From positions 176,727 to 240,726 of the forward strand of contig NW_004797705.1 of assembly GCF_000002075.1 (NCBI RefSeq): a stretch of DNA of 64,000 bases, given 5' to 3'. Shown here piece by piece: positions 8,884 through 48,868 of the stretch. A program made the translations under genes and the position numbers. The notes under the pieces were generated by a model that was given only the letters and a program-made list of their open reading frames with translations, was not told where the DNA came from and did not search any database. Source of the stretch: Aplysia californica (lineage: Eukaryota). The stretch's first letter is position 1. Each line of letters opens with the position of its first letter.

Positions 8884-8966
<83 letters not shown>

Positions 8967-26603: not shown

Positions 26604-29600
26604 TTAGGAACTTTGGCCAGTTTTTACAAACGGAAGATTTCTCAAGTGCTGTAAAATATCCAGTCCACTGCTCCATGGCACAACAGAGGCCTCAAGCTTT
26701 GACCTTGGCACTGGCTTATTCTTCTCTGCCATTTTCTCTATCACTTTGTGAAGCTTGAAGCCAACTCGTGGCATTAAGAAGTCCTGTGGCCTTAGGGCCA
26801 GACCTGGACATAAATCATTAAATCCATCGCCAACATAAATGACGTGATGATATGTGACACCATGCTGCTGTCTTTCAGAGATGAACTCATTCAGTATATG
26901 CCCTTTACACAAATTGACAGTACTGAGGGGACACCAGTCTTGGGTGTGGTACTGTTCTATGATCAAGCAGCCATTGTCCTCAAATCTAGCAGGGTTTGTA
27001 AATGTCCGGAACAATGAAGACAACTGATTCTTTTTGAGAATATGGTCAATGAATACAGAGTTGGAGTCAGAGATAATAATGTGTTCGAACGATGTGCTTT
27101 TCCGTGTGAAGTGTAAGAGTTCTTGAATGCCCTCTGTCAAGCTAATTTCAGACATGCAGTTCAGAATGTTTTCTGGAGTACTCCCATTTCTGTGAAGATA
27201 TCTGAGGATTGCAAAGATGATTTAGATCTAGAATCTAGTGTTTTACCAACATAACACACACTGGATAAGGGATTTGCAAAAACTTTAAATAGACCTATAT
27301 TTAGCCACAATGAACATATCAAAACTATTTTACGGAAACATTTTTGTGACCTTTCATGTCCTTTCCCAACAGCTTTGCGGGTTACAATTGACAATTACAG
27401 TTGACTTTGTTTAATATGAACCTGTTTAAAACAAAATTCCTGTTAACACAAAAGGATTTCAAATCCCCACTTTTCCCCCTCTTTGTTTTATGCATTGCAG
27501 ATTCTTAACACGATCAAAATTTCTAACAAATCTGATAAACACAATGGAATTTTGGGTTGTTTCATCGTTCCTCCCACCTAACTATCCCCCTTCCTTTTTT
27601 GCTCACAATAGACTATCCTTGTCAATAAATGTACATGTCACCCAACATGCATTCAATACGGTAAAACGTCTCATCAAATTTCTTGTACCCTATACTTATT
27701 CAGAAGGTGGTGAGAGAATGGTTTTGTTTTGCGGGACCAGGAGACGAGACATCGGGAAGCTGCCATCCCTTATCTAATCAGAACCTCTCTTTTTAGATTA
27801 TCAATTTATCTTTATTGCAGCTATGACTTATAATAAATTCAGTGTTTCATAATTTGTATTTGTTTTTAAACTGAGTGGTAGCACAGAATACCACCAAGCA
27901 AACAGCTGCAACCTCCCTTGAAACTCAATCTGTGCAGTCAAGGCATCCATCTGAGGTTGACAAAATTTTCCTTTTTTTTAACTGCAAAAGGTTGGCAGCT
28001 CTGCATGTGTAATTAAATACTAAAAATAGGTCTAGCATCTGATCAGAAAAGTAAGAAAAGAGTCATCATCATCATCATTGCCTTTCTCACCCTGGGTCAG
28101 GATATAGGCCACGAACACTCTCCACCTTTCCCTATCCTGGGCTAGTCGCTTGATGTCACTCCACGTCTTCCCACTTTTCTGTACATCCATTTCTGTGACT
28201 CTTCTCCAGGTTCCACGAGGTCTTCTCCTTGATCTTTTACCCTATGGGTTCCAATCTAACACTTTTCTTGTTATGTAGCTGCTTGACTTCCTGAGAGTGT
28301 GTCCAATCCATTGCCAACGTCTTCTTCCCACCTCATCTCTGACCGGGCTCTGTCTGGTTCTTCTTAATACTTCCTCGTTGGTGATCCTGTCTGTCCATTT
28401 GATCCCCAGCAGCCTCCTCAGACACTTGTTCAAGAAAACCTGGATCCTCTTTATGCACCTATGGGATGCGTTCCACGTCTCACATCCATACAACTAGACT
28501 GACTTCACATTTGACTTGAAAATTCTAAGCTTTGTATGTAATGAGATATCCCTGGTCCTCCAAATCCTGCTCAAAGAAATAAATGCAGCCTGTGCCTTTC
28601 CAAAGCGGGACTTTATTTCAGCGCCTGTACCTCCCTGTCTGTCAATTATACTCCCAAGATAGCAGAAGGATTCGACGTCTTCTATTGCATTTCCTTGTAC
28701 TGTGACCTGCTCCTTTCGCGGTGCATCTATCCTTAGGACTTTCGACTTTCCGGGGTGGATCCTCAATCCAACAGACTCTGATAGGCTGTTAAAAATTGTT
28801 GTCTTTGCTTGCATCTGTTCCTGATGTGTGCCAGAAGCGCCAAGTCATCTGCAAAGTCCAGATCGTCCAAATATGTCCATGGGGTCCACTGTACACCGTT
28901 TCTGTGTCCTCTGGTGATTTCCTTCATCAGCCAGTTGACTGCCAATATGAAGAGGAACGGTGATAATAAACATCCCTGTCTCACACCAGTCTTGATGTCA
29001 AAGTTGTCAGTGAGCTGGCCATCATGTACAACCCTGCAACTGGTCTCTTTGTACAAGCTCTCGATGAGAGTCACCAACTTCTGTGGGATTCCGTGGTGTC
29101 TCAGTATCTTCCATAGGGTTGCTCGGTCTATACTGTCAAAAGCCTTCTCATAGTCAAGGAAGTTAACGATCAGCTGGGAGTTCCACTCCAGGGACTGTTC
29201 CACAATAATCCCCAGCGTGGCAATCTGGTCAGTGGTTGAGCGATTTTTCCGGAAACCAGCCTGTTCATCCCGTAGTCTTGGATCCGTTGCTGTCTTGATT
29301 CTCTCCAGAATGATTCTGTTGAAGACCTTACCTGGTATTGAGAGAAGAGTGACCCCTCTGTAGTTGCTGTAGTTGCTGAGATCCCCCTTTTTGGAAGCTT
29401 CACAAGGTGTACTTCTTTCCAATCTTTTGGGAACTTGTTCTCATTCCAGATCCTGGTAAACAGTTGGAGGAGGATGACTGACGTCACATTGGCATCTGCT
29501 TTTAGGGCTTCAGGTGGAATCTGGTCAGGACCGGCTGCTTTACTTTGTTCAGCTTCTTAATGGCATCCAGAATCTCTTGTTTTGAAGGAGCATCACAGCA

Positions 29601-32095
29601 GATTGGTAACTCATTTTTTGCTGGCAGGATGTTTGGTGGGTTACTCGGTGGTGGTCTGTTCAGGAGACTGTTGAAATGCTCTACCCATCGTTTGGACTGG
29701 GCTTCCTTTCCAAGAATTGTTTTCCCCTCTTGATCCTTTACTGGTACTTCAGGTTTCCCGTATTTTCCAGGAAGTGTCCTCGTGGTCTGGTAAAGGATTC
29801 GCATGTGCCCTCCTACCGCTGCTTCCTCTGCCTTCTCCGCCAGCCTATTCATGAATTCTTCCTTGTCTTTTCTTAGTGATTTCTTGACATCTTTAGCTGT
29901 TGTCCTGTACTTCTCATATGCATCTGCTCTTGATCCTCTTGTTCTACTTGCATTCGCTTCTGCCTTCAGCTGTCTTCTTATCCTAATTAAATCCAATGAG
30001 TGTTGGCTAATCCATTTCTTGTGCTCCCATTTCTTCACACCAAGTACTTCTTGACAGGTTGATGTAAAGACTTCTTTGACCTTGTTCCAGTGTGTATCCA
30101 CCTCCCTGTCTTCCTCACCAAGATCTGCCAAGGGTTGGTGTTCTGGTTCCATGCTTTTTCAGACGAAGCTTGAGTTTTGCTAACAGCAGATGATGATCTG
30201 ATCCAACGTCTGCCCCTCTGTACTTTGACATCTTCCAGTGAACGCCTGAACCTACGAGAGATACTAAAATTATCGATCTGATTCTCTGTCCCTCCATCCA
30301 GTGATACCCAAGTAGCCTTGTGGATCCTCTTATGGGGAAAAACAGAGCCTCCGATGACAAGACTGTTGAAAGCACAGAGGTTTGCAAATCGCTCACAGTT
30401 CTCATTCATTTGTCCCAGGCCATGTTGTCCCATGATTCCCTTGTAACCTACGTTGTCCTGACCAATCTTGGCATTAGCATCTCCAATTATGATGTTGACA
30501 TCTTTCTTTGGCAGTTTGTCGATGACCCCCTGGAGCCGGCAGTAAAAAGCATCCTTGTCATCATCCGAAGCATCGTTTGTTGGGGCGTAGATCTGTACAA
30601 CGTTCATGTTGATGCTCTTACTTCTGGTAGTGAACGAAGCCATGATGATCCTCTCCCCGTGTGGTTCCCATCCTCTAAGTGACTTCTGCCCATACTTACT
30701 CAAAATAATTCTAACTCCCTCCGCATGGTGCTTGTCTTCCCTCCCAGAATATAATATTTGTTCCCCCGAGCTGAGCTGCTTCTGTCCAGACTGTATCCAG
30801 TGGGTTTCGCTGACTCCTAGTATGTGCAGCCTGTATCTTTTCATCTCTTGTGTCACTTGAGAACTCTTTCCTGCTTCATACATAGTGTGAACATTCCACG
30901 ACGCAATCCGGAGAGACTTGTTCGACAGAGAAGGTTTTGGGTCAGAAGAGTCCTTTCGGCTATGTCCGCTGTCCTTCATTGTTCCTGCTGATGCAGAAGC
31001 TCCTCCGTCTCCCAAGATGGAAAAATTATAAGGCATGTTTGTTCGTGTCTCCATAACTTTTCTTTTTTACTGGGTCAGGTAGTTGGACCTCCGCAAACTA
31101 TCATTTTTCGGGAGACCAGACCTATGCACCTTTAGTCGCCTCTTACGACACGCAGTATCACGGCAAGTGTATTCTTTACTCCCCCATAGTAAAACTATGG
31201 GGCCCCCCACCTGCGGGGGCAAAGAAAAGAGTAGCATCTCCTTTTTTTGTTCTTTTCATACAAACCTTGCTTAACACAACATATCTAGAACACAAAGAAA
31301 TTCTCTGGTGTGGAGATGTTTTAAGTTATAAAACTTTACTACTCACGTTATTCCAGTATTAATTTTTTAAAACCATGTATATAGCAACATTTAGTTCAGC
31401 CTTGACTTGTGCACATAGGCACTTGGAGAAGCCTTCAAAGTATTCACCCTGTGTGCCAGCTACACCAAACACAATGTGTTCAAACACAAGCTTTAAAGTT
31501 GCAATGATTTTTCAAAATATTAAACAAACTATAAAAGAAATCCAACAGCAAATGACAAACCTCAAACACTAGCAATTAAAACAGTCAAGCATGATCTGTC
31601 AAAATCTCACAACGTTGGTGCTTTCAAACTGTGAATCATATTTTGTGTGCGACTCATTATGGCTCCTATTTGTGACAATAATGGGTCATTATTTTTAACT
31701 GTAACATGTAAAACATTTAGTAAATAAATAAAGGTCGCATTTTTGTCTTTGAAAAAAGAATTGGAAGTCAGATGTACGTTAAATTAATGATTACATGACA
31801 CAGACTGTTTGGTGTTCCCATAAGGAATTTTCCCCCCATTTTCAAATCATCTGAAGATCTGAAATGATTGAGAATATAGAAAGAGCAAAGCATGGAACAC
31901 TTACTTGAAAATTTCACCCATATAATTCGTCCAACCATCATCTTGATACAAACTGGATATTTCTTCTGGTAGTTCCCCATTTGGTGCCAATTTTCTTACA
32001 TATAAATCACTGTTTTCATCTACAAGGGTGTGGTCGAAGTCAAATACCATCAGCACTTTCTGAGCTACAACACTGCGTTCATTTTCTTCGGCCAT
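26604..32095 (-). CDS. PHOSPHO2: Pyridoxal phosphate phosphatase PHOSPHO2-like (HAD superfamily, PHOSPHO1/2 family), 262 aa, 2 coding exons
   Basis: Exons 32095-31905 and 27201-26604 join in phase (GEIFK|YLHRNG). HAD motif I VFDFDHTLVDENSD, IISDSNSVFI, NLCKG and YVGDGFNDLCP are present. Cap loop GWTNYM resembles PHOSPHO2 more than PHOSPHO1. An acceptor at 32097 directly precedes the ATG. Confidence 0.9.
28064..31221 (-). mobile_element. Full-length but inactivated RTE-clade non-LTR retrotransposon (APE endonuclease + reverse transcriptase) in the PHOSPHO2 intron
   Basis: Fragmented ORF 31054-28242: ASWNVHTM, GVSETHW, GDANAK, NQIDN and SDHH (endonuclease); NYRGVTLLS, DYEKAFDS, GVRQGCLLSP and LDFADD (RT). 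3' (ATG)n tail; 11-bp TSD AAGAAAAGAGT at 28053-28063 and 31222-31232; several frameshifts and an internal deletion near 30135. Confidence 0.97.
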
Positions 32096-32943
32096 CCTGA
32101 CAAAAGATAAGAAAAATATATATATCTTTATTAAATGAACACATTCAATATTTTTGGGCTCACGTCAGTGACAAGAAAACTAAGGAAAAATTTGAAAGAA
32201 AACTTTTATGACTGAATGAGATTTCCAAATTTTGAAACTTCAAACACTACTCATATATGTATATATATATGTAGATGTAATAAACAATATCACAAGATAG
32301 ATATAGACCATAGAGCACCCTCAAGCAGCTCCTTTACAATAAACTCCAGCAAGTCTAGCTTTCCAACAAACCTAAGCTTCCAAAATAGCAGCAATGAGCC
32401 TTAATTTTTTATGTGGCAAACAGAACCATTGAAACTCTGAGGACGGAGGTATGGGTGACACAATCATTTTTATAAATAAATTTATAAACCTATTCTCTAG
32501 CATTTTGGAACCAGTCGTGCACAGATATCTCCAACATGTCCGAGGTTGACAAATGGGTTCGACACATCCACAATTCAAGTAAAGTGCGATAATGAATGGT
32601 ATAATTGTCGGAAAAATAAATCGCTACCATCGTGTTTGTTTGTTTGAGTAAAGAGAAGCACACCGACACAATAATGGTCATTTGGTACTGGGAAAAGTAA
32701 GACAGACAGAAACAACAGAGGGAAAATAAAGAAGTAGGACCTACCAATGGCCCTCTCTACCATCATAAAAAGTACCTGTTATCAAAAAGGATAGAAGAAG
32801 GATGGATCATTAAGGAAAATAGTGCTGCTGATCAGTGATACAAAGAAAATATAGTAGCTCAGTCAGGGAATGGCAAATTGTTCCAGCTATCCATGAATTC
32901 AAGTTCAGTGTGTTCAAGTTATCTGTGCTTGACTACAATTAAA

Positions 32944-33351
32944 ATGGAGTCCGCTTAAACAGAATATGGTTAATCTGAAAAGAGCAGTAAACCGAAAAAA
33001 AATAAATCCCCGAATTTTTTTCTGTTTGACCTTGTCAGAACAGTTGTTGTTGTTATTGATCCAGCAACAGCTGGGCTCTCACCGTCCTGTCCAATGCCAT
33101 GTAGTGCGACCTTGTCAGAAAACTATTAATTAGCTAAAATGCTCCCCTTTCTAAACCGAAAAGAGTTTCAATGGTTTTGTCGTCTCAACCCTCAGAAAAC
33201 GCAAATCACAAAGTCATAGTACACACTTCAAGATGGCAAAACAGGAGAAAGAGACATGAAAATGCATTTGTATTGAATGCAGACCAGAGGCATCGCCAGA
33301 GTGCTGTACTGTTTGCCTACGTGTATCACATACATCAGTAGGCCTACATAC

Positions 33352-33382
<31 letters not shown>

Positions 33383-33467
33383 AGTGACGCAAAGATGGAG
33401 GTATGTTGGGAGAACTTCGGTTGGTCATGCATAGACTATTGTCTGGAATAGCAGGTTACATATATAA

Positions 33468-33534
<67 letters not shown>

Positions 33535-33875
33535 CCCTTAACATGAGCACAGTGCTTTTCATGACATCATTGGCATTGATGAGCTTTCTTACTCACTCCT
33601 CTTCTCCTCTTCTCTACTTTTCCGTCTGTGTTCTGTGTGATTGTTTGGCAGAAGCAAGCCAACAATATCGATAAGAAAACATATTGAGCACAGCCTGCAG
33701 CTCAAAGACAAGAGTTACTGAAAGGGAAGATGAAAAAAACTTTCATACATGAAATTTGCCGCAAGCATGACACTCTCATCCATACATTGTCGAAAATCAT
33801 CGCAATATGTGCAACAACCTAAAAATTACTGAAAATCTGACGTTCTCTCAGATTTTGGTTTAAGTGGACTTCATG
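32944..33875. mobile_element. Tigger-like MITE with internal (TA)n
   Basis: atggagtccgcttaaacagaa vs ttttggtttaagtggacttcatg|TA. Confidence 0.6.
33041..33107 (-). mobile_element. 67-bp 5'-truncated retroposon end with (AAC)n tail
   Basis: Perfect 13-bp direct repeat GACCTTGTCAGAA at 33028-33040 and 33108-33120 flanks an insert with a gttgttgttgtt tail. Confidence 0.7.
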
Positions 33876-33877
33876 TA

Positions 33878-34676
33878 CAGTCCATGCTGGCTTTAACACT
33901 TTGCCGTCACATCTCGCCGATCAACAAGCAGGCCAAACTTCCTCTCGCGTCATAAAACGCTGATCGGTGATGTTTACCGCCCAGTTTCTTTGGATTTCCC
34001 CCAAATGCCAGTGATGGCAAGGGTTTTTACTTATGAGCCTTGTGATGGCAAAGTGTTAAGCACGGTCATAGGGAGAAAGCATAAGCATGCTTAACTCTGA
34101 GGCGTGCTTAGTGCAAAGTAGACATAATCCAGAGATTTTCATGTAGAAAATTTCCTGAGTTATTTCCCTCTGTTTGTAATTTTATTAAGTTGTGGTCGCG
34201 CAAAAGTGTGCGCTGTCCTTTTTGCCCGTCATGGTAGTTTTTGTCTGCTTGTTTGTTTTGTGGTCGAATGGGAAAGGGGCAAATATGAAATCGCAGCCAG
34301 CCCCACTTTCTCCTCTCCCCGACTCTCTTTGTATTTTTTTCGTAAGTGGGTGACTTTGCCCTGGGCAAGATCCTATGTCCATGTAGGCAGCTGTGTGCAT
34401 CTCTCTGCCTTCCTCTCCGGAAGTGAGTGCGTGTGTGTCTCCATCACTTGCGTTCTTTGTGTTTCTCTTTGCTGCAGTGTAGACTGTGTTCGAACTTCGA
34501 TGGGTCATCATGAAAGAATTGACTGTTTTGTAAATGAAGCGTGCCCAAAGCCAAAGTTACCGTACTTAAAGGCGTGTTATTTCATGTAGCAAAAATTCTG
34601 TAAGAGCCATTTAGTGTGCTTGGGTCTGAAACGTCAACGTGCTTTATGCCACCGTGTTTAAAGCTGGCACGGACTG
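33878..34676. mobile_element. TA-flanked pogo/Tigger-like MITE whose left TIR is interrupted by a piggyBac-like MITE
   Basis: TA|CAGTCCATGCTGGCTTTAA[insert]GCACGGT vs ACCGTGTTTAAAGCTGGCACGGACTG|TA. Confidence 0.8.
33897..34055. mobile_element. piggyBac-like MITE (TTAA TSD)
   Basis: TTAA|CACTTTGCCGTCACA...TGTGATGGCAAAGTG|TTAA. Confidence 0.9.
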
Positions 34677-36588
34677 TACTTTACTCCAATCTGCCAGGAT
34701 GACATGCTTCATGGCATTCGCATTTACCTCCTTTCACCAGAACAATACAAAGTGAGTTGTTTTTATTTATATTCTTATTATTTTCAGCACAAGGACTTGT
34801 CTACACTACTCCTGTGGAAGGGTTCCAGATGCTGGTTTAGTTTTTATGTTCTGATCTTTCTTGGTCAAGCTAACTAATACCTGTCGCCTCCCGCACTTGA
34901 GAGCTGGCCCGCCCGTTAGTGATTTTACTCGCCTTGCGCGCTCAGCGGAGTGAGAGAAGGAGGCGAGTTTTGTCGCCAGGAGTGCTCAGTGACAGGGGCC
35001 TTATGATGCCCGAAACGAAAAAAACGGGTGAGAATAGTAGGCTGTTGTTATTCTCACCCGGGGTGAGAATAATATCCAGTTTAAAATCCTCACTCCGTTT
35101 GCCTTTAAACTTTAACTCATTCGCTACGCCGAGCCATGGGGGGCAGCGCGGCTAAAGTTCCGTCAGTACACTAAGCCGCCCCCGGCGGCTCAACAACCGA
35201 TCTTCAATTTAAGCTTAGATTCTATTCCAATCCACAAATCCATGTGAAAATAAAGGTCAAAATATAATGTTGACTTCCGGGTCAAGCACTTCCACTGAAA
35301 ATTGGAAATTTAGATTCAGTTTTGAAACCTGATTTCGTAGTTTGTTCGACTTTGTTTTATCGCGATGCCAAAATTATAATAGCCCGGACACCAGTCTTAG
35401 TAATTTTACACAACAAAATCTATCATTATTTTGCCCACTAAAGAAATGTAGGACTCTTTTTTTATAATATTGATACGATTGGACTCACATTGCCAATGCA
35501 CTGTTATTGAGAAATCAATATTTTTGAGTGCTAGATCTAGATCTAGGTCTAGATCTAAATTGTCAAAAAAAAATTTCTCCCCAAAATCACTACTTTTTGA
35601 TGAAATTACACAAAAAGTGCCACTCAAGACATGTATAGGTTTATTCCAAATGTAATTCTAAATAATTCCATATAAGATACGAGTGGGGTTTTCTCTGTTT
35701 GTGATCGTTTTTCAAGAATATAAATTTTTTTCTCAATATAATATGTTATGATCCAAATGTACAAATATTATAGAATGAACGTAAATAACTGCAAATTTTT
35801 CAATTTTTTCCAGTTCTAGATTCTTATTAATTTATGATTATTTTGATGTATCATTTGACTAGATTTCTCTAGATCTAGAATCTAGGTGCAAACATATTTA
35901 TTGAGTTTCTTCACCAAAGATTATTAATTTTTTATTTTCAAATTTTATCCGCATCCAATCAAAATTGTGTTGCATAATCGTCTCTTACAGGAACCAAAGT
36001 TGAAAAATACATAAATAAACTAAAAACATTACAGATGTATTCTACAAACCATACTGAAAATATTGGTATATAATACGTTGATATTATTTGAATTTGTGGC
36101 CCCAAAGACTTTTTAACTGCTCGCTAGTCATCATCTCATTCGCCCTCCCGAAAAAAATTCGTCCACAAGCCGAAAATAATACGTAGCGCATGATGAGTTA
36201 ACTTCAACTTGGAAATGGAAATCCTGCCGCTTGCCACCAATGGAACACTTCTTCTGACAATATGAGACTGGTTCTCTTTCACCATTCAGCTGATTCGATG
36301 GAATCTTATTCTTTGCTTCTACTAGATATCTAGTCTAGTCTTAGTATAGATCTAGAGTGAAGACTATTACTTAACTCTTAGGATCTACTGTTACTGTCAC
36401 TGTCAGTACTGTCACGATCCCGATGCACTTGCCGTTGCCTCTACTCAACTGTTCATCAATTCAGACCATGATTATGAACCAGCCGCAATCCCCCGTCGGC
36501 TTCTCTTTTATTAGATCTCGTCTAGAATCTAATTCTTTTTGTTGTTTTTCTTTGGATGAAATACGTGGTAGACCTAGGCCCTACTCAC

Positions 36589-36877: not shown

Positions 36878-39800
36878 ATGGCCACTGTGATGCATGGAAG
36901 GCGCAAAGGGCAACAGAGGGGTAAGATGACAGCTAAAATAAATAAATTTCTATCTATATTTCGGTTGAGTCCTGTAATTTAGTACTCTGGTCTGATAGCA
37001 ATTATGGCTTGTTGATTGATACGACTCTATTTCACACCACAACAAAACAAAATTCATTTGCTGGCACTGTCCTTTGGCCCGACTTCTAACAGGCATTCAA
37101 TTGATTCCTTTTATGCTACTGTAGAAAAATTATAGGTGGTTTGACAGCCCGTACAACTTGAAACACTAGATCCATCAATATATTATCATGCCAATGCTTC
37201 CTTTACTTTATATCAATCATATTATTTATTATTACATGTCATTCATAGGCCTACTTTATCGCTGCCTTTGCTTTCTAATGTCTGCATTAGGTTTAGATTT
37301 ATATTTACTATCACATTCTTTTATACTACTGGTGTTCCACGTTAGATTCCTAGGAGTTAAACTCCAATAATTTCCTTTGCCAAATGCCGCGCATCTAATC
37401 AATGAGTCTTAAAGCTCGCCATCGATTTACATTGACATTGAGATATATATTTATCTTGTCTGATACATACTTTGATTATATGGCCTCTTCATTCTATTTT
37501 TCTCTGAGTGGACAAAATCTGAAGTAATTTTGTTAGTGACTTCTATTTTTTGGTTTCATTATTCATCTCAAGATCTTTATGAATTGCCCAGCCTTTGAGC
37601 ACCTGCTGAAGCTCGTTCTGTTTTGGAAAGTATAAAACTTGCTTCATTTTCTGGGCCAACTGCACAAATATATACCTCCATTCAAGTCCTAAAATTCGAA
37701 CTTTTAAAAGGGAGCAGTATGTGTAACACTGCTGTGGAAGTATTGAAGGAGAATACTATATGAATTTCAGAGGATAATGAAGCAAGGATGCGTGCAATCA
37801 GACTTCTTTAAAGCATGTTGATATATTTTTTTTAACAGCTATTTCTTGGAAGGAAATTAAATCAATTGAGGTAGTATTTGAAGAAGCCCATATAAAACGA
37901 TCAGGAAAAGACAAATGCCATTTCTGGGACACATGAATAGACATATATTATAAAGGCCTTCAACATCTACATTTTCATTGACAAAATTAATGGCAAACAA
38001 AGCAAGGGTATGTAGACCCAGAGCAACTTAATTGGAGACCCTTAACACTTTGCCATCACAAGGCTCGTAATAGTAAGAACCCCTGACATCAAAGGCAAAG
38101 GCATTTTGAGAAAAATCCCCCAAAACTGGGTGGTAAACATTGCCGATCTTCGAGATGTGACGGCAAAGTGTTAGCAGATGGGTGGCAGGGAAAGTTCAGG
38201 ATCATACATTTTTTAGAAAGCATCTGATCAAAGGAACAAATGGAGATTCATGATGGCAGATCAGGCACTTGATGATGATGATGATTTTGAAACAACACTC
38301 TAATCAGTGTAGGCCTATTTGTTAAGTAAATGCTAATGCTAGCCTGTGTACTTTGTCATGTTGAATGTTTCAACAAAAATGTAGAAAATGAAGTTTGTAG
38401 CTTAATTACTTATTTTACTGGCTGCTGATCATAAATTTGACCCTTAGAACCAATATTTTTCAAATTGCAGTTGACTCTGGAGGCCCTAAAAATGTTGGGA
38501 GAGGTACAATGATGCTTCCAGATGGCACAGATTTGCGCCAGGTCACTGTGCTCAGTAAGGCTGATTGGGAGAGGATTGAGCAGGAACTAAATCGAAAACA
38601 AATTCAAGATGAGATGGTGCGCAAAATTCGTGAAGACAGAGAGGAACAGAAAAGGAAATCTAAAGAGATTATCAAGAATTGGGGCAACACCATTGCAGTA
38701 AGTAAATTAAAATTATTTCTTCTTTAAATGATTACTCTGAGTTGCAATGAATTCTGTTTTTGAATATATGGTTTCATTTGTAATGGTAAATACAATTAAG
38801 CTTTAGTAGCTCAAATTTTCTTTATTAAATCTTCTTAACATGTGTTGACCCCATTAAATTTGGAAAAAATTATTGTTCTGAAACCAAAAATTCATTGTAT
38901 TAATAGACTGAGAGATACACATGCATGTGGTCAGAGGAAAAATTTGTATTCTGCTCTAACATACCAGATACCATTTTGACAAAAGAATTTTTAGGTAAAC
39001 TTAATCCCAGTTCAGTTTAGTAAAAATGCCACTTTCTAAGACTTTGGAGATTGCTTCTAAACATTCTCAATTTCTTTGATGATATGAATAATAACAGTCA
39101 AACCGAAGAAGTTGAGATCTTTAAAAAAAGCGGGGCCACTTTTAAAAGAAAAATATTATGCAATGATAAGAGCCTAGTCATTTAGAATTACATCACAGGT
39201 GCATACCTTTATCTGTACGCATTGATGTAGAGGAAATTGAATTAATATAAATTTCTAAACTTGTTGATCTGCACTAAGTTTCAATCAAATTCCACAATGA
39301 TGTAAATTTTACAAAATGCTGAAAATCTCAGGGCCAAAGGCAGAGGAAACTGGAAGCCCGGAGAGTCAGAGAAGAAAAGGAAGAAGAGGAAAGGAAACAG
39401 ATTGACCTTGAAGAAGCCAAGTACCAAGCTCAACAACGAAAAGAGGCCATTGAGAAGGCAAAAACACAACAGTATTACCAGACTGACCGAGTCAAGAACT
39501 TCCATGTAAGGCCAGTTAACCAGTATAACATAAGCTTTCTTTAGTTTCTTTCTTTTTGATGATTGCATATTTTTATATATTCCAGCCTTAACCCTCATCC
39601 TGCGGGAGCCGGGTTTATGTAGCCCGATAAGCCTATTTCGGCACCTCGCCTGCGTTCTGGTCCCGAGTCAGTGTAGCTCCTGGCTCAGCGCACGCGCAGC
39701 GCACATCCTCTTACGTGTCATTCGGGTCCCGAGTCGGATCCCCATTCACGCAGNNNNNNNNNNNNNNNNNNNNNNNNNNNNNNNNNNNNNNNNNNNNNNN

Positions 39801-40648
39801 NNNNNNNNNNNNNNNNNNNNNNNNNNNNNNNNNNNNNNNNNNNNNNNNNNNNNNNNNNNNNNNNNNNNNNNNNNNNNNNNNNNNNNNNNNNNNNNNNNNN
39901 NNNNNNNNNNNNNNNNNNNNNNNNNNNNNNNNNNNNNNNNNNNNNNNNNNNNNNNNNNNNNNNNNNNNNNNNNNNNNNNNNNNNNNNNNNNNNNNNNNNN
40001 NNNNNNNNNNNNNNNNNNNNNNNNNNNNNNNNNNNNNNNNNNNNNNNNNNNNNNNNNNNNNNNNNNNNNNNNNNNNNNNNNNNNNNNNNNNNNNNNNNNN
40101 NNNNNNNNNNNNNNNNNNNNNNNNNNNNNNNNNNNNNNNNNNNNNNNNNNNNNNNNNNNNNNNNNNNNNNNNNNNNNNNNNNNNNNNNNNNNNNNNNNNN
40201 NNNNNNNNNNNNNNNNNNNNNNNNNNNNNNNNNNNNNNNNNNNNNNNNNNNNNNNNNNNNNNNNNNNNNNNNNNNNNNNNNNNNNNNNNNNNNNNNNNNN
40301 NNNNNNNNNNNNNNNNNNNNNNNNNNNNNNNNNNNNNNNNNNNNTATTTTCATCATCAGTTAACACACTCCCGCGGTATTCATGGCGAAAACACACGTTT
40401 CCCGGCGCGCGCGCTGTACACCAACAATACACACTGAGTGACCCCGGCGGCCTGCCCGGCGAGTCCGACGTAATCGGTTGCTGATAAGATACGCATCTGG
40501 GCACAGACGCAGGATAAGAGTTAATCTTCTTTATATCACTATATATTCATCCATCAAGTTATCACTATGTACCACTTTAGTTGTTTTATTTCTATAAGGA
40601 TGTCTGAACCATTTTTCATAATGGGACTATCATTTATTTATTAGGCCC

Positions 40649-40709
<61 letters not shown>

Positions 40710-43700
40710 ATGTTCTTGAGTTTGAAAGGACACAGCAATATTTTTATTAAATTCACAAGGCTAAATGTAGTTATGCTATCTGTTTTTCAAATACAATATA
40801 CGAAGGACGTCGAGAAAGTAAGTACCGTTATAAAATAATTATAAAAGAAATAATTTTCCCAATCAAAACAATTTATTTTTGAATACCTCATATACATGAC
40901 TACTTCTCCACGTAGTCACCAGAACTGTTGAGGCATTTGTCGTAACGTGGGATGTACTTCTGAATGCCCACATCGTAGAAAGCTGGCGCCTGCAATGTCA
41001 GCCAATGTCCAGTCTCTCCTGTGAGATCAGCGTCTGAGTCGAAGTCCTGCACGGCCAAAAACTTTTTCAAATGCAGGGACAGATGAAAGTCACTCTGAGC
41101 CAGGTCTGGGCTGTACGATGCGTGCTTCAACTGTTCCCATCTGAAGGAGGCGATCAGGTTTTGGGTCTGTGCAGACTTGTGAGGATTTGCATTGTCGTGA
41201 AGCAGAACAACGCCGTCGCTAAGCATACCGCGTCTTTTGTTTTGAATAGCTCTACACAGTTTTTTAAGTGTGTTGCAGTACACGTCAGAGTTAATTGTCT
41301 TCACACTTCCCCAAAATTCTACTAAAAGAACTCCTGGCCTGTCCCAAAACACTGTACACTTGACTTTTTTTCCTGACGCGGCCTGTAGAGCGATTCAAAA
41401 CAAAAGACGCGGGATGCTTAGCGACTGCGTTGTTCTGCTTCACAACAATACAACTCCTCACAAGTCTGCACAGACCCAAAACCTGATCGCCTCCTTCGGA
41501 TGGGAACAGTTGAAGCACGCATCGTACAGCCCAGACTTGGCTCAGAGTGACTTTATCTGTTCCTGCATTTGAAAAAGTTTTTGGCCGGGCAGGACATCGA
41601 CTCAGACGCTGATCTCACAGGAGAGACTACACATTGGCTGACATTGCAGGCGGCAGCTTTCCACGATGAGGGCATTCAGAAGCGCATCCCACACTACGAC
41701 AAATGCTTCAACAGTTCTGGTGACTACGTGGAGAAGTAGTCATGTAAAAGAGGTATTAAAAAATAAATCGTTTTGATTGGGAAAATTATTCCCTCGTACA
41801 TGTTTTTAAAAAAAATTATACTTTCCATTTTCATTAGTATTTTCAAATATATAATTTCAGAGTGCGCTGACCCTCACTGAGGTTCTCAAGGAGCGTGAGG
41901 CTCAAGTGGAACTGAAGCAGTTGAAGGAACAGGCTATGAAAGATCAGGACAAGGAATACATGAAGATTGACTTGGAAATGTATGAGAGGAGTATCCAGGC
42001 AGATCAAGCAAAAGCAAGAGCTCGAATGGAGGCAGCTAATAGGACAGCTGACTTCCANNNNNNNNNNNNNNNNNNNNNNNNNNNNNNNNNNNNNNNNNNN
42101 NNNNNNNNNNNNNNNNNNNNNNNNNNNNNNNNNNNNNNNNNNNNNNNNNNNNNNNNNNNNNNNNNNNNNNNNNNNNNNNNNNNNNNNNNNNNNNNNNNNN
42201 NNNNNNNNNNNNNNNNNNNNNNNNNNNNNNNNNNNNNNNNNNNNNNNNNNNNNNNNNNNNNNNNNNNNNNNNNNNNNNNNNNNNNNNNNNNNNNNNNNNN
42301 NNNNNNNNNNNNNNNNNNNNNNNNNNNNNNNNNNNNNNNNNNNNNNNNNNNNNNNNNNNNNNNNNNNNNNNNNNNNNNNNNNNNNNNNNNNNNNNNNNNN
42401 NNNNNNNNNNNNNNNNNNNNNNNNNNNNNNNNNNNNNNNNNNNNNNNNNNNNNNNNNNNNNNNNNNNNNNNNNNNNNNNNNNNNNNNNNNNNNNNNNNNN
42501 NTACAGCCCTTGGTGCTAGTGATTTTTGTGTGTCTGGCCTATTGTCCTACAAGCACATTGCTCACTGAGCTGTCTAGTACCAGCTCCAGTCTCCAAGTTA
42601 TGACAGTTTTTGTCACAATTGGTGGCTGTTGAAAAACCTTCCCAAGGAGCCAGAATTAATATGGTTTTACCCTTGTTCCATAACATTTCAGTTTCATTTT
42701 GCACTAACCAGTTTTCACAATGAAAATTTGGTGCTTTTAAAGTGTTTTATATGAAAACAGGAAATATGGGGTTAGTACAAGAAAGCTTGTGATATATCAC
42801 CTTCTTTTCGGGTAACTATCATATCCTTCATTTTAAGACTATCACCATATTTAACTGATAGAAGTTTCTTCAGTAATAGTTATGCAGGGGTTTAATTTTT
42901 TGAATTTTGCAGGAGGTGTAAGCCGGGGCAGAACTATTTTTCTTCTCAATTTAACCTCCAGTATAGCCATGCCTACATGTACTTAAGATTTCTTAGGTTT
43001 TTCTATCGCTATCCTAAAAATTGGGTGCTTTTTCCTCTTCATTTTACACTCCGAAGTGTGAAAACCTGAGAACAAGCTCATCTTTGTTCTTTGCTCATAC
43101 CCACATAAATAAAAAATCTCTCATCCTTTCAGGTCCTCAGCATCGATTGTGTTCTTTTTGAAAAAATTCATAAGTTGTGTGATCCTTATAATGATTTTGC
43201 ATACTTTTCATAAATTTCATATAATCTGAAAAGTGCACCAAAGCATGCAAAGAAGACCCATGCACACACTCCATGTACACAGGAGTATCTTGATTTTGTA
43301 GTTAAGACATTGTTCAGACATCTGCACATTTGATCCCTGGCTTGGCCTGAGAGAATCTTTCTTGGGAAAAATAGTGTACGGTTCTTTAATATCTCCTTTT
43401 TATTTTTCTGTAACTAAAGTATACATATTGGGTGTCCTCCACGGGGATAGAGATAGTTAATTTGATGAAGACAGCCTGCCACGTTATGTCATGAAAGTCT
43501 TCATCTGGAAGGAATTCAAGACTATACACTATGTACACAAATAATTAGTGTTTTTGAATTAGAGGGTTTTTTTTAGCGACACCCCAGGGTACAAGCGGAA
43601 GAAAAAAGTAAAGTAAGTTTTTAGCTCAATATTTTGAAAGTACTGCAATTAATTTCTCATGGTCTGTTCATAGGTTATAAAGGACTTCACTGTACAAGCT

Positions 43701-46700
43701 TTGTTTCAGTGTTCCATTATTTTACAACTGGTTTTCTCACCTTGTGTTTTACTAATAATTGTTTGATTTATCATTTTAAGACTTTCTTTTTTGCTATTTG
43801 TTGTTTACTAGCCATATCTTATTGGATGTAATCAAATTATCAAATAAACAAATGTACATTGCCTCCCTTCAATCTGTTTCTTTTTTCTTTTCTTTTCCTT
43901 TTCAATAATAAAAAAAACAACAACAATGTACCAGTGTAGAAAAGTGTATTCCTCTACAACAACCCCCCCCCCAATCTTCTAAGACCATTTTGGTAAGTCC
44001 TATGACCCCCCACACCAGCTATCTTTCCCCTTATGCCATGAAAGGCTTTTACTAAATAGTAGTATTCTCTGTGGCAACCACAGGATTCATGAGCACTTGA
44101 AGTCTGGAGAAAAACTGAGAGTGGAAGACGACAAAGAAGGCGATGAGCTGAAGAAGTTGGCTGTGCAGTTTCAGATTGAGAAGGAGCGGCTAGAGAACAT
44201 CAGGCGTGAAGAGAGGAAATCACTCATGAAGGAAAACGTGCAGCAGATCCAAGATGTGGAGAAGATGAAGATCCTACAGGAGCGACAAGATGAGGTGCGG
44301 TTTTACTTTTCTTTCACTTATAATAGGAACTTGGCAGGGAATGATATTGACTATCTGATATTATTGATAATAGTTGGCTATGAGAAATAATGACAAAATA
44401 TGCTTCACATAATCAGATGTCAAGCCTGGATTCCAATTCTATACAATGCATGCTTTTATTTTGGACTTTTTTTAACATGACTCATGGATTTGTTTTTATT
44501 TCAGGAAGAAGATGAAGAGTGCAGAGTTTTTGCTGCCGCAAAGAGAAAGATGATGAAATTGAGGGCTCAAAAGGAGCAGGATATCCATAAGTAAGTGAAT
44601 TTATCTGATTATGCAAAAGCTGTGCAGTATTCAGTTGTCATATTGTTTGATTGCATAAAAGCAAATAACAAAATACATAACATTCTGGTAGAGGGGGTGA
44701 GGTATGTGTGTGAGGGGGAAGGCGGGGGGGGGGGGGGGTGGGGGGGGAGGAGTTGTTAGCTGTGTATTGACAAGTGGGAACCTGTCACCAACTAACTATG
44801 ATAATGATCTAAGATTATTTATAAAATGAAAGTGACTCGCCAAGGATTTTTCCATGCATGGTTTGGTGTTCCTCCAGCATGTACATCACTAAGCAGTTCC
44901 ACTGTACCATCTAATTAAGTCCAAAATATTCAAAAGGAAGTCTTATTACCCAACTCAGGAAAAGCAATGAAATTCTGGAGACTTTTGGGTGGGTTTTTTT
45001 TAACCCTATTCGAACGCCCTGGGGTCATTTTGTACCCCCGGGGTTGTATTCTTCACATTTTAGAATACTTCTAGTGCAAAGATCTCTTTGAAACTTTCAG
45101 TATTACTCAAAAATAGTGCAAAGATCTCTTTGAAACTTTCAGTATTACTCAAAAAATTATTTTGACAGACTGCTATGCAAAGCGTACGGATCGGATTAAC
45201 GAGTTAATTTCCTGTTTGGAAAGTTGTGGCACAGAGTTCCCCACATTTTATGGATCCGATAGTAAAACACGACGTACAGATAGGGTTAAACTGCTACAAG
45301 CCATTATCTTAGAAAGTTGATGATATGTAAAATTCATGCTCAAATGAAGACTGAAAGAAAGATGTCTCTGGATTTATTCTTATTTGAACTTACTGAATTT
45401 TCTAAAACAAGGAGCTTAATGTTTTCTAGTACAGTAAATTTTGCTACCTCTTTAGGACAGAAATAGTCGTGGTTTATGTCTAGAAATAAAAATTGATTTT
45501 TTTCAGTAAAAGACTTATCCTTTAGTTCTTTTTCTGTTTTAGTTAAACTATTGATTCTGAAAGTTGTTCTATAAAATTCAAAGAAACATGATGTATTGAA
45601 AAATGACTGTTTCTGTTTTCTAATTTTAGCACAAAGCAAGCCCAGTTGGAGCGTATCCGCGAGAAACTTGCTGCTCAGATGAAGCAGAAGATCAGTGATG
45701 AGGAGGACAGGATACGTAAAGCTGTGGAGGAGAGTGAAAAGAAGAGAATGGATGAGGAGAGGGCAAAGGAAGAGAAACTTCTGAAGGAAATCAAAGAACA
45801 AGCAGAACACAGAAATAAACAGGTAAAGAGCTAGAGATAATACTTAAAAATCAAGGAGGTGAAAAACTTGAATATGCTTGGCTCCCATATATATATGGGA
45901 CTGATTGCTATACGCTTTTTTGACACTTTGACTACTTTTTACCTTTATTTAGGATATTGGTCTTAAATTTCACTCTTTTAAGCTTCTGTGCACAATGAAA
46001 CTATGAGTTGCTGTGTTTTGATAAGGGGAAACATAGTAGCCTGCTAAATTCGAAACATGGGACACTTTTTTTTTTTAATATCGTTTTTCAGGTGCAGCCA
46101 TGTGAAACATTACTGAAAGAAATGCCAGCTGAAAAAAATAGTCTTGACACCCTAAAGCTTTCTCAAAACTGAGTGAAATAAGCAACCATATCATTCTTAC
46201 CGTAGTTAAAGACAAGCATCAATGAACTGGTCTTGAAAAGCAGTTTACTATACTCTCCTTTCTTTTTCGTCTGCTGCCACTTATCTGGTGGCTGCTCGCT
46301 GTTACCAAATTTATTTTTAAATTTATTCCATCATGAATGTACAAATTATTTATACTTCCTTTAATCCTTTATGCTCCCCTGCAAGTTGCTAGCTGTGGGC
46401 CTATATTTTTCGATCTACAACACAACACTGTGTTTTGTATGTAGCTGATTTTCCTATATAATAGAACCAGGTTTCAGGATTTTTAAATTATCTTTTCACT
46501 GATAGATTACATTGGTACACTGGAAAGTGTTTTTTCCAGCTAGATTAAGGAATGGTCTTTAATTTTACTCAGTTTAACAGACGAGGGCATGCTTGATCTG
46601 TGCCCTTGTTTGAGAATACAAGGTTGTTGACCCTACCTTCCTGTATAGTAGCTTATCCACTGATAGTCCTTTCATAATCTCACCATAGAACCAGACACGT

Positions 46701-48868
46701 TGTTTTGAAAGAGAAACATAATGTACTTTTGGAGACACCCCCACACACACACACCCTATCCACTTCTTTCATTCTATGGATCAATATCTATTTTCAGTTG
46801 AAAGAAAAAGAAGCACAGAAAAAGAAGTCCAAGATGGAAGAACTGGAGATGTTGGAAATGCGTCGAGCTGCTGATGAACTCTTCAGACAGAATGAAATAG
46901 ACAAGATGATGCGCCGTAAATCTCAAAATGATGATCTACGGAACTTCCTGATTGACCAATATGTGAGTCACTTCATAGTCATAGAAATAGCTGCCTATTT
47001 GACTTGTGACTCGCTTCCTTTGAATGGTGAAATGGTATAGAGGTTTAACACTCCTGTCAACACTTTTAGGTTGTTTAAGAGATAGGACCTCAGAGTTTAA
47101 TACCCATCTCCATAAGGATTGAGCCAAATGGGAAATTCATGTCCACAATATAGTGCCTTTCCCAAGGACAGAATGTCGGACCGAGCTCAGGCTCGTACCC
47201 CGAACACGCAATTTCACGATTACGGGTCCAGTAGCCTACCCACAAGGCTACCGATCGTTTTCTTTGCCAAGAAGAGATGTTCATGTGTGTGGATACAACT
47301 GGCATTTTTGCCTTTAAAAAATAATTCAAGTTTAATCTTTTTATACCTTGAAGAAAATACTAAGTTTATTAAGTCTGTTTGAATTTACTAACGTGCAGTG
47401 GATGATTTTGTTATCGTCCCTGCTACTTTCATTCATGTCTTGAAGGAGAAGAATGAGTTATTGTAGTGTCTAATTCCCCTTTTTTAATATTAAAAGAGAT
47501 TTTACGGGTAAATGTTTTTGAAGGCTGCCGATTTATTGTGATGAAACATATTAATGGTATACAATGGTACCAGGTTTCTAACTTTCATAAGCGTTATAAA
47601 CTGCCCAGAATAGGCAACTGATTGAAGAGAGTCTTGAGCAGGTCTTATCCTTCTAGTAGCTCACATCTGTTGTCTTGCTTTGCCTCCAAAACTAATAACC
47701 ATTATTATATCTTGGTGCTTTAAAAAAAACAACAACCCTCAAACCATGTCATGGAAAGGGGGCTCAGTAGCTCAAAAGTCAGTTTTGTAGTCTTTCCTTT
47801 GAACATTTCTGCTTCCTGATGAAATTTCACTGTTATCAAACGTTGTTGCTGCTATTTCAGAATGAACGCGTGGACAAGGAGGAAGACTCAAAGAAGGCTC
47901 AGCTGGCCCTGGACAAGGCAAATGTTGAGCTCATTGAGAAGGAGGAGGCTCAGTTCCAGGAATATGCGAGAAAGGTAGGCGTACGTTGTAATGGATGGTC
48001 TCTTGCTTCAGATGTTTGGCTTTTCTCAGTGAAGTTTTTCTCAACCTTTTTTATTTGTTTCTCTTACTCAATCCACAACCATCATCTTTCTTTGATGTTT
48101 GTTGTTCTTGTTTTCTTCTTTTATCTCTTTCCATTCACCAACTGTACTCTCAGACTATGCCTTACAAAATGTTGTACATTGTATACGCAGTTGTTATAGT
48201 TTCATAACTGCCTGTCTACTGCCACTAAGTGTGATGAACCTTGTGACTTTATAAATAAAGTCAATGATTGTGTAAAACCCAAAACTCACCAATGACCCAC
48301 AGCTGCATGGATTACTGGTATTCGCTGCACTCATTGATTATTGATGAGTTGTCCTTGTAAAGGGCCACATTTATGATATAACATATGACTACACCCTGTA
48401 AAAACTAACATCAGAGTATAGAAAAGGGCTGCTGGAAATCTGTTCATATTAAGCCTATGTTCCGCTCGCTCTATAAATGTAGTACTCCTAATCCCAGTTT
48501 ATCTAGTATTTGTTCTTGCCTAGTTCTTTCCACTGATTCGGTCACCTACTAAAAGTGTTGACAATGCCATAGGCTACATGGAAACAGGAAGTTTACTTCA
48601 TTTGTCATGTGTCACTCTTGCCCAGGTGATTGACCACAGCAAACAGGGTGGCCGCAATGTCTACCCTCTGGAGAAAGCTGCCCGTGAGGGAGCGGGAGGT
48701 GGTCTTGGCCCAACGTTCCCCGGAAAGGGCGGGATCCGGCCCAGCTACATGGTGTCGGACAAGTCTGGCGTGCAGATGCCGCATTACCAGCGCGATTCCA
48801 CCAATGAGACCAAGCAGCAGATTCATGGCAAGAACCCCAGCAAGAACAGACTAGGGTTTGTGTGGTAG
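36878..48868 (+). CDS. CFAP210: Cilia- and flagella-associated protein 210 (CCDC173), coiled-coil axonemal protein, ~550 aa, 10 visible coding exons
   Basis: Exons 36878-36920, 38471-38697, 39332-39505, 41861->42057 (runs into gap), 44084-44294, 44505-44590, 45630-45822, 46798-46962, 47861-47974, 48626-48868, all phase-compatible. Motifs HGRRKG, LPDGTDLRQVTVLSKADWERI, WGNTIAGQRQRKLEA, YYQTDRVKNFHSALTLTEVLKERE and C-terminal RLGFVW match what I recall of CCDC173. AATAAA near 49047. Confidence 0.92.
38046..38170. mobile_element. piggyBac-like MITE, inverted copy of the 33897-34055 family
   Basis: TTAA|CACTTTGCCATCACA...TGTGACGGCAAAGTG|TTAG. Confidence 0.85.
39592..40520. mobile_element. piggyBac-like non-autonomous element spanning an assembly gap
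   Basis: TTAA|CCCTCATCCTGCG ... CGCAGGATAAGAG|TTAA; GC/CpG-rich interior. Confidence 0.8.
39754..40344. other. Assembly gap
   Basis: N run. Confidence 1.
40648..40707. repeat. (TAT)n microsatellite
   Basis: Direct read. Confidence 0.95.
40801..41796. mobile_element. Mariner (DD34D) derivative made of two inverted copies of the transposase 3' part
   Basis: Minus ORF 41352-40900 (FWDRPGV..LHDNANPH..YSPDLAQSDF..GDYVEK) mirrored on plus from ~41383 to ~41790. Ends TA|CGAAGG and CCCTCG|TA. Confidence 0.92.
42058..42501. other. Assembly gap hiding the end of CFAP210 exon 4
   Basis: N run begins inside the coding exon. Confidence 1.
45004..45285. mobile_element. piggyBac-like MITE with an internal 42-bp tandem duplication
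   Basis: TTAA|CCCTAT...ATAGGG|TTAA; duplication starts at 45072 and 45114. Confidence 0.85.
47120..47252 (-). mobile_element. tRNA-derived SINE fragment
   Basis: Reverse strand shows A-box/B-box-like sequence then gtccttgggaaaggcact; matches 23848-23972. Confidence 0.7.

Follow-up and report, generated by a model that had tools for sequence, protein, structure and literature searches.

An ancient head-to-head pair of a PHOSPHO1/2-family phosphatase and CFAP210 in Aplysia californica, with a probable common compact promoter

In the window analyzed here (the whole stretch of 64,000 nucleotides), Aplysia californica carries a gene for a PHOSPHO1/2-family phosphatase (− strand) and CFAP210, also known as CCDC173 or FAP210 (+ strand), arranged head-to-head, the phosphatase gene being intact and single-copy. 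Comparison of gene order indicates that this pair dates to the protostome–deuterostome ancestor, and we consider it rather likely that a compact bidirectional ciliary promoter has been common to both genes since that ancestor, being rarely split by rearrangement.

The phosphatase comprises 262 amino acids encoded by two exons (32095–31905 and 27201–26604, − strand), whose GT/AG joints yield an open spliced frame; its translation agrees residue for residue with P0001, the RefSeq protein of Aplysia. It matches PF06888 (E 3e-53) at the only such locus of the genome (n = 1) and contains all four HAD motifs, I to IV, which places it in the PF06888/HAD family. The open reading frame 26604–27155 noticed in the original prediction is the last exon alone; the exon with the catalytic DxDxT motif lies 4.7 kb upstream, past a LINE. 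Searches for tRNA genes and Rfam families between PHOSPHO2 and CFAP210 returned no matches, and no gene intervenes. Thus, the predicted divergent arrangement without a gene in between was confirmed by the spliced frames, an intron seen in RNA, and these searches, and the host, which had been supposed to be a protostome, is one. The features of the locus are as follows.

26604–27201, − strand: last coding exon of PHOSPHO2, with HAD motifs II to IV and the stop codon (Pfam match, spliced frame)
28100–31221, − strand, limits approximate: decayed LINE in the coding intron of PHOSPHO2, presumably RTE-like, with endonuclease and reverse-transcriptase pieces (open reading frames; Exo_endo_phos match under the curated cut-off)
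31905–32096, − strand: first coding exon of PHOSPHO2, with acceptor, ATG at 32095, and HAD motif I, DFDHT (spliced frame, RNA joint)
32097–36588, − strand: 5′UTR intron of PHOSPHO2, 4492 nt, GT..AG, repeat-rich, removed in the RNA data (splice joint present in an X4 run contig and in a single X23 polyA read)
36589–36618, − strand: non-coding first exon of PHOSPHO2 as seen, the true start possibly being further up (30 nt past the splice joint in an RNA contig)
36619–36768, no strand: ~150-bp interval separating the two 5′ ends seen in RNA, candidate bidirectional promoter (RNA contig records)
36754–36791, + strand: conserved module with a CRE-like site (36754–36761), an RFX half-site-like motif (36764–36769), and an X-box-like site (36779–36791) (cross-species alignment, motif scan)
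36769–36920, + strand: CFAP210 exon 1, with the observed 5′UTR from 36769 and ATG at 36878 (spliced frame, RNA)
38471–38697, + strand: CFAP210 exon 2 (PDB match, exon mapping)
39332–39505, + strand: CFAP210 exon 3 (exon mapping)
39754–40344, no strand: assembly gap in CFAP210 intron 3, with no coding loss by homology (flanking exons contiguous in orthologues)
40849–41790, no strand: inverted pair of mariner-type transposase fragments in CFAP210 intron 3, with 408-nt arms 93.6% alike
41861–42057, + strand: visible part of CFAP210 exon 4, running into a gap (PDB match, exon mapping)
42058–42501, no strand: assembly gap that by homology hides ~9 coding bases and the exon 4 donor (orthologue exon ends)
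44084–44294, + strand: CFAP210 exon 5 (exon mapping)
44505–44590, + strand: CFAP210 exon 6 (exon mapping)
45630–45822, + strand: CFAP210 exon 7 (exon mapping)
46798–46962, + strand: CFAP210 exon 8 (exon mapping)
47861–47974, + strand: CFAP210 exon 9 (exon mapping)
48626–48868, + strand: CFAP210 exon 10 with the stop codon and family-specific C-terminus (PDB match, exon mapping)

CFAP210 has 10 exons (36878 to 48868, + strand) with 547 visible amino acids and no internal stops. Database searches were run exon by exon, the exons being joined solely for the frame check. In PDB, the sole matches of exons 2, 4, and 10 were CFAP210 or its sea-urchin counterpart, a TPH protein (E 1e-27 to 6e-7). In Pfam, single exons did not reach the threshold of PF13868 (TPH), and hence the identity of the gene is drawn from PDB and from the orthologous loci, where the corresponding neighbors of the phosphatase do carry PF13868. 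Exon 10, single-copy in Aplysia, encodes the family-specific C-terminus, and together with the length of ~550 amino acids and solved-structure matches to CFAP210 only, this agrees with the predicted orthology, as do ordered exon matches in six genomes. In five orthologues, exon 4 ends 11 nt past the last complete codon seen in Aplysia, at a phase-2 intron, and Aplysia exon 5 opens in phase 2; the assembly thus lacks ~9 coding bases and the donor, the two sides being in frame by homology. Both assembly gaps are compatible with one continuous CFAP210 gene.

The head-to-head pair is kept in Mytilus, Owenia, Lingula, Ptychodera, Branchiostoma, grouse, and meerkat, that is, in seven out of 11 informative look-ups and on both bilaterian branches, with identical orientation in every genome that has it. 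The gene models of Xenopus are likewise head-to-head, 457 bp apart (PMC5245798, supplement). The neighbor of the phosphatase matches eight to ten Aplysia CFAP210 exons in order in five genomes, and the first five in Mytilus; the meerkat call rests on the Pfam label, strand, and position, with no exon matches. The distance between start codons ranges from 0.3 to 5.3 kb (e.g., 313 bp in Owenia and 905 bp in Lingula) without an intervening gene. The pair is lost in the damselfly Ischnura, the barnacle Amphibalanus, and medaka; in the latter two, the head-to-head partners of the phosphatase are SDHB and a BSD-domain gene. Weak exon matches in the barnacle locus lie inside a called BCS1 gene, look low-complexity, and were not counted as CFAP210. 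In the sea urchin Diadema, no gene was called within 10 kb of the locus, and in two metagenome contigs with CFAP210, which the tree could not place, the 3.3 kb (L026) and 8.9 kb (L036) preceding it showed no phosphatase. The outer neighbors vary by phylum (MFS/PGAP3, Reeler, LicD/PHGDH, tandem copies, KLHL23), the exception being PHGDH, common to Lingula and Mytilus; a whole-locus tblastx search for common flanking genes was too noisy and was set aside. Since the pair is kept in both protostomes and deuterostomes, it predates their split. This holds for a comparison of bilaterian genomes, with meerkat, grouse, and Xenopus standing in for human among vertebrates. The predicted linkage since the bilaterian ancestor thus stands, but it is not universal.

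The observed RNA 5′ ends of PHOSPHO2 (~36618, − strand) and CFAP210 (36769, + strand) are ~150 bp apart, as judged from contigs, which do not show true start sites and of which run X4 is RNA by our guess, with very few raw reads over both first exons; the start codons are 4.8 kb apart. The module of a CRE and an X-box-like site upstream of CFAP210, a composite pattern defined after the sequences had been inspected, aligns in five invertebrates from four phyla (molluscs, annelids, brachiopods, hemichordates), and a CRE half-site lies at most 170 nt from the CFAP210 start codon in five out of six invertebrate bilaterians (background 0.03 to 0.16 per 170 nt). With strict X-box criteria, the scan gave no match in Owenia or Mytilus. 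No copy of the module was seen in the bird and mammal stretches, where the starts may be misannotated. X-box sites are also present upstream of CFAP210 in the metagenome contigs with no phosphatase seen nearby, and thus the motif may serve CFAP210 alone. A CCAAT box, present in Aplysia only, was rejected as a part of the module. Overall, the 5′-end distance and conserved motifs speak for the shared compact promoter region that had been proposed.

The phosphatase had been taken for PHOSPHO2, and the family assignment holds, the one-to-one relationship less so. In the best tree, vertebrate PHOSPHO1 and PHOSPHO2 group together with the Aplysia gene outside (support 91/90); the alternative, one-to-one grouping with PHOSPHO2 is not rejected (p-AU 0.30), and the identity to meerkat PHOSPHO2 is 43%. 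The invertebrate gene is thus probably co-orthologous to both vertebrate genes, with PHOSPHO2 being the positional orthologue. It had also been described as a vitamin-B6/phosphoethanolamine-type enzyme. Human PHOSPHO2, when purified, acts as a phosphatidic-acid phosphatase (bioRxiv 10.64898/2026.07.31.742009), so that phosphatidic acid may be the substrate instead of vitamin B6, and the latter label is uncertain.

We suggest that one very small bidirectional promoter has probably served the pair since the last common ancestor of protostomes and deuterostomes. It would follow the ordinary ciliary-gene logic of CFAP210, with RFX X-box-like sites, adjoined in spiralians and the hemichordate by a CRE for CREB/ATF/CREM-type factors, and would start the phosphatase transcript in the opposite direction, adding a modest rise to broad basal expression once the ciliary programme turns on. 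Separation of the genes would require a break or insertion within ~150 bp, damaging at least one start site, and hence the junction would persist while outer neighbors are replaced and transposons accumulate in the phosphatase introns. Its direct basis is the gene structures, the spliced UTR exon, the 5′-end distance, the orientation, the motifs, and published co-induction in Xenopus, from which we infer motif binding, two-way action of the motifs, and promoter sharing as the cause of pair retention. The losses in Ischnura, Amphibalanus, and medaka count against this explanation, as they show that the pair can be dissolved.

Published expression data bear on whether selection for a joint function adds to this. 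In Xenopus, PHOSPHO2 and CCDC173 are both in the 9-hour core list of multiciliated-cell genes; the 6-hour list contains CCDC173 and lacks PHOSPHO2, which is likewise not among the genes shared with the Rfx2-knockdown list (PMC5245798). Spermatogenic expression of PHOSPHO2 has been reported for human, lemur, and mouse (PMC12328211), and the gene is differentially expressed in non-obstructive azoospermia (PMC7844508). Moreover, Phospho1/2 are evolutionarily co-retained with the ciliary phosphatase PALD1, and a ciliary role has been proposed on this basis (PMC8054476), so a link of Phospho1/2 to the cilium had been suggested before, whereas the original prediction was not aware of one. The place in the core list, the spermatogenesis and azoospermia data, and the co-retention, along with the activity of the human enzyme on phosphatidic acid, favor functional coupling, in which the phosphatase would work in motile-ciliated cells and sperm, e.g., in phosphatidic acid, phosphocholine, or phosphoethanolamine turnover for ciliary membrane growth, or in local phosphate release, the linkage being kept since joint induction with an axonemal gene brings a benefit. 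However, the mRNA of human PHOSPHO2 has been called ubiquitous, and PHOSPHO2 was not found in the accessible part of a human motile-cilia signature that contains CCDC173 (PMC7331728); its partners in barnacle and medaka are different, a literature search for PHOSPHO2 knockout or localization data yielded none, and promoter leakage alone predicts co-induction. The best reading is that PHOSPHO2 is partly co-induced in ciliated cells; we regard the coupling as doubtful, and equally tentative is its fullest form, a bidirectional CRE–RFX module more than half a billion years old tying a lipid/phospho-metabolite phosphatase to the motile-cilium programme, with the enzyme putatively supplying the growth of ciliary or flagellar membranes.

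Simple inertia, that is, close genes in slowly rearranging genomes whose short interval is rarely hit, without any promoter constraint, is less plausible still. The invertebrates that keep the pair belong mostly to slow-rearranging lineages, the losses fall in arthropods and a teleost, and a second junction, PHOSPHO2–PHGDH, survives between the brachiopod and the bivalve; yet all remaining outer junctions turned over between phyla, the ~150-bp interval is kept in a repeat-rich 927-Mb genome next to introns of 4.5 to 4.7 kb, and the non-coding module is alignable between mollusc and hemichordate. The notion that the adjacency arose separately, or that the neighbor is another TPH-domain gene, could appeal to the several ciliary proteins spanned by PF13868 and to the meerkat call, but it is refuted by the in-order, exon-by-exon matches, and the PDB matches to CFAP210 only, the single-copy state of both genes in Aplysia, and the constant orientation make it extremely improbable.

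PHOSPHO2 is an orphan enzyme with a debated substrate, and a probable ancient common start with an axonemal gene provides a testable guilt-by-association lead to motile cilia and sperm; if the membrane-supplier reading is true, PHOSPHO2 would gain a physiological role and become a candidate in disorders of sperm or motile cilia. As a compact case, the locus also lends itself to the question of why ancient pairs persist, and the natural splits in the insect, barnacle, and medaka allow comparison of expression with and without linkage.

Similar to other CFAP210, TPH-domain microtubule inner proteins of axonemal doublets, the Aplysia protein is alike in length (~550 amino acids) and exon order and shows nothing unusual. 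Among the PHOSPHO1/PHOSPHO2 HAD phosphatases, Aplysia has a single gene, probably outside the vertebrate group. It is uncommon for a short promoter module to align among molluscs, annelids, brachiopods, and hemichordates. Enrichment of RFX motifs at the promoters of ciliary genes extends from cnidarians to humans (Quigley and Kintner, 2017, PMC5245798), and the X-box-like site beside the start of a motile-cilium gene conforms to this, but in Aplysia it has a CRE partner at a conserved distance and lies between first exons that point in opposite directions.

About 600 conserved ancient microsyntenic pairs (CAMPs) have been reported, 54.8% of them 5′–5′ in human, with HSPE1–HSPD1 as a co-regulated 5′–5′ example (Irimia et al., 2012, PMC3514665). 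The main text of that study, which our search covered, does not mention the pair; we also found no paper treating PHOSPHO2 and CFAP210 as a pair, and no match in the supplements of PMC2871058, PMC4745085, and PMC3889689. Like CAMPs, these unrelated genes are adjacent across bilaterian phyla in 5′–5′ orientation, with conserved intergenic sequence, losses in lineages that rearrange fast, and less than 1 kb between 5′ ends (~150 bp in Aplysia; a figure from Aplysia RNA, Owenia and Lingula start codons, and Xenopus models), and they may be co-expressed. What sets the pair apart is the unequal breadth of its partners, the enzyme being broadly expressed and the other a motile-cilium protein, and a promoter module alignable across four phyla. 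Thus, the pair is a new example of an already described class of ancient head-to-head pairs, and its kind is not surprising.

The divergent arrangement originally noticed, a PHOSPHO2-like gene on the minus strand and CFAP210 on the plus strand with no gene between them, was confirmed by the gene structures and by an intron joint covering the interval; the host is a protostome, as had been supposed, namely Aplysia californica, the ORF at 26607-27200 matching the RefSeq Aplysia PHOSPHO2 protein at 100% identity. The locus comprises:

32095-31905 and 27201-26604, minus strand: PHOSPHO2 coding exons (two exons, GT/AG ends)
36754-36791, upstream of the CFAP210 ATG: CRE-like site, RFX half-site-like hexamer, 13-bp X-box-like site
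36878 to 48868, plus strand: CFAP210 coding exons (ten exons, 547 visible residues, no internal stops)

Joined by script at the GT/AG ends, the PHOSPHO2 exons yield an open 262-aa protein equal to the RefSeq Aplysia record, with HAD motifs I to IV all intact when checked against the motif definitions; the Aplysia assembly has no other PF06888 locus. A decayed LINE lies inside the 4.7-kb intron separating the coding exons.

CFAP210 was searched against databases one exon at a time, never as a joined sequence; PDB matches of exons 2, 4, and 10 are only CFAP210 chains and a sea-urchin doublet-microtubule TPH protein, exon 10 is single-copy in the Aplysia genome, and a 2781-nt contig beginning in exon 1 is about the size of the full transcript. 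Of two assembly gaps, 39754-40344 lies within intron 3, its flanking exons being contiguous in every orthologue, and 42058-42501 truncates exon 4. In Owenia, Lingula, Mytilus, Ptychodera, and Branchiostoma, exon 4 ends 11 nt past the counterpart of the last full Aplysia codon, at a phase-2 intron; in Aplysia, two of these 11 nt are readable before the gap, and exon 5 begins in phase 2. By homology, the second gap is predicted to hide about nine coding bases and the exon-4 donor, with both sides in frame. Intron 3 also carries two mariner-type transposase fragments (40849-41790), an inverted pair whose 408-nt arms are 93.6% alike.

The two ATGs are 4783 bp apart. The minus strand has a strong donor at 36588 and an acceptor one base ahead of the phosphatase ATG; in public data aligned to 31700-37400, this joint, with GT..AG ends and 4492 nt skipped, is present in a single contig from run X4 and a single polyA read from run X23. 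The sequence from the phosphatase ATG to its non-coding exon is thus all intron, leaving no intervening gene. The X4 contig reaches 30 nt into this exon, to about 36618, and the CFAP210 contig starts at 36769, so the observed 5' ends are about 150 bp apart, these being ends of contigs, which do not define start sites; the RNA status of X4 is a guess, and the three polyA runs give few raw reads over either first exon. Within the first PHOSPHO2 intron, many partly matching RNA reads pile up at 32630-32760, 34390-34530, and 35900-36150, which are high-copy repeats transcribed elsewhere in the genome. Inverted repeats of about 100 nt, 77% alike, flank the candidate shared promoter, one in each gene's first intron (33962-34060 and 38041-38148), and are probably copies of one common short element.

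Phosphatase neighbours were looked up in eleven named genomes, and a TPH gene was found directly upstream, in divergent orientation, in seven of them, across both bilaterian branches:

Owenia: 313 bp between coding starts
Lingula: 905 bp between coding starts
Mytilus: 5.3 kb
Ptychodera: 4.7 kb
Branchiostoma: 1.2 kb
sage grouse: 0.4 kb
meerkat: 4.5 kb

The Aplysia CFAP210 exons align in order on this neighbour in all of these except meerkat, where its identity comes from Pfam label, strand, and position because exon 2 falls beyond the fetched flank. The predicted linkage is absent from Ischnura, from Amphibalanus (L040:4228-8495), where the phosphatase is head-to-head with an SDHB-type gene, and from medaka (L041:746-6325), where the partner is a BSD-domain gene; the phosphatase behaves as if prone to borrowing the promoter of a neighbour. 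Diadema, with zero called genes within 10 kb of the phosphatase, was counted neither as kept nor lost. Two unlabelled metagenome contigs, taxonomically unplaced, show no phosphatase within 3.3 and 8.9 kb upstream of CFAP210. Human CCDC173 (CFAP210) and PHOSPHO2 we take to be divergent at band 2q31.1. Both are included in a deletion-patient gene list (PMC3704668), and published Xenopus models place PHOSPHO2 (minus) and CCDC173 (plus) 457 bp apart (PMC5245798 supplement). Because the pair occurs in spiralians, a hemichordate, amphioxus, and tetrapods, invariably 5'-5', gene order indicates that it dates to the protostome–deuterostome ancestor.

The outer neighbours, an internal control, differ among phyla, except for PHGDH after the phosphatase in Lingula and Mytilus (L002:12057-17714 and L003:18179-21517; same strand, exons up to 85% identical); this CFAP210-PHOSPHO-PHGDH block, common to a brachiopod and a bivalve, was seen in neither Aplysia nor Owenia. 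Tandem duplicates of the phosphatase, always on the far side from CFAP210, occur in Ptychodera (two copies seen, L006:10001-17326) and Branchiostoma (three copies seen, L007:10001-16663). Sage grouse has another TPH gene (277 aa, L005:1-1569) immediately downstream of CFAP210 and co-directional with it; its weak CFAP210-exon matches make it possibly a partial duplicate. The Aplysia pair is flanked by convergent genes, a Per1-family (PGAP3-like) gene beyond CFAP210 (61140-61541, minus) and an MFS transporter containing a single ORF of 396 aa on the phosphatase side (8330-16515, plus). In human, PGAP3 and PHOSPHO1 presumably share a chromosome with HOXB, and CCDC173-PHOSPHO2 is close to HOXD; with the PGAP3-like flank, these positions would fit one ancestral linkage group.

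Owenia, Lingula, Mytilus, and Ptychodera share the order and spacing of the promoter module, which in these species lies 80 to 170 nt before the CFAP210 start codon. A CRE half-site lies within 170 nt of the ATG in five out of six invertebrate bilaterians, where 0.03 to 0.16 per 170 nt would be expected. A strict X-box scan was positive in Aplysia, Lingula, Ptychodera, Branchiostoma, and the two unlabelled contigs, the background rate being about 0.1 per 320 nt; it missed the degenerate versions of Owenia and Mytilus. The composite pattern, composed after the sequences had been seen, has one match in the window (0.01 expected). A CCAAT-like word was ruled out as a module part, as only Aplysia has it. 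RFX motifs occur at motile-cilium promoters from cnidarians to humans (PMC5245798), and hence an X-box is expected for CFAP210 and alone is no proof of an effect on the phosphatase.

Vertebrate PHOSPHO1 and PHOSPHO2 fall into a single group (91/90) in a 30-protein tree, with amphioxus adjacent and protostomes outside. A grouping of invertebrates with PHOSPHO2 alone is not the best tree but is not rejected (p-AU 0.30); the Aplysia gene is best read, from this phylogeny, as PHOSPHO1/2 in its unduplicated state, PHOSPHO2 being the copy that vertebrates kept beside CFAP210. As to the suggested vitamin-B6/phosphoethanolamine-type activity, PHOSPHO2 has been described as a PLP phosphatase, PHOSPHO1 acting on phosphocholine and phosphoethanolamine (PMC8054476); a 2026 preprint reports that purified human PHOSPHO2 is mainly a phosphatidic-acid phosphatase (bioRxiv 10.64898/2026.07.31.742009), which may be the substrate instead of vitamin B6.

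Promoter sharing as a structural constraint is the most likely reading, and we consider it fairly probable. Both start sites would be interleaved with one small module, a break separating the genes would have to fall in about 150 bp, and insertions would be accepted only within the flanking introns, the pattern seen at the Aplysia locus. Pure inertia, which leaves the conserved module and the turnover of outer junctions unexplained, is improbable; coincidence or misidentified genes are excluded.

Selection for a genuine ciliary function of the phosphatase is less likely than promoter sharing, if more plausible than inertia, being compatible with expression and co-retention data. Such a link is not as new as originally supposed: May et al. 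reported co-retention of Phospho1/2 with the ciliary phosphatase PALD1 and floated a ciliary role as a possibility (PMC8054476). On co-expression, both genes are among the core multiciliated-cell genes of Xenopus at 9 hours; among the matches listed, only CCDC173, and no PHOSPHO2, appears in the 6-hour list and Rfx2-knockdown overlap (PMC5245798) and in the human motile-cilia signature (PMC7331728). PHOSPHO2 is expressed during spermatogenesis in human, lemur, and mouse (PMC12328211). Its expression in human tissues, described as ubiquitous, weakens the case for a ciliary function, as do the lineages with a different head-to-head partner swapped in. These data fit broad PHOSPHO2 expression plus a weaker ciliary-cell induction that would act via a shared promoter.

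We found no paper describing the PHOSPHO2-CFAP210 pair or its promoter module, and published pair lists may already include it; the pair offers a testable lead on the orphan enzyme PHOSPHO2. Some 600 ancient pairs of head-to-head genes separated by short intervals make up an established class (PMC3514665), and the PHOSPHO/CFAP210 pair, likewise ancient and head-to-head, is a real and well-supported example of it.
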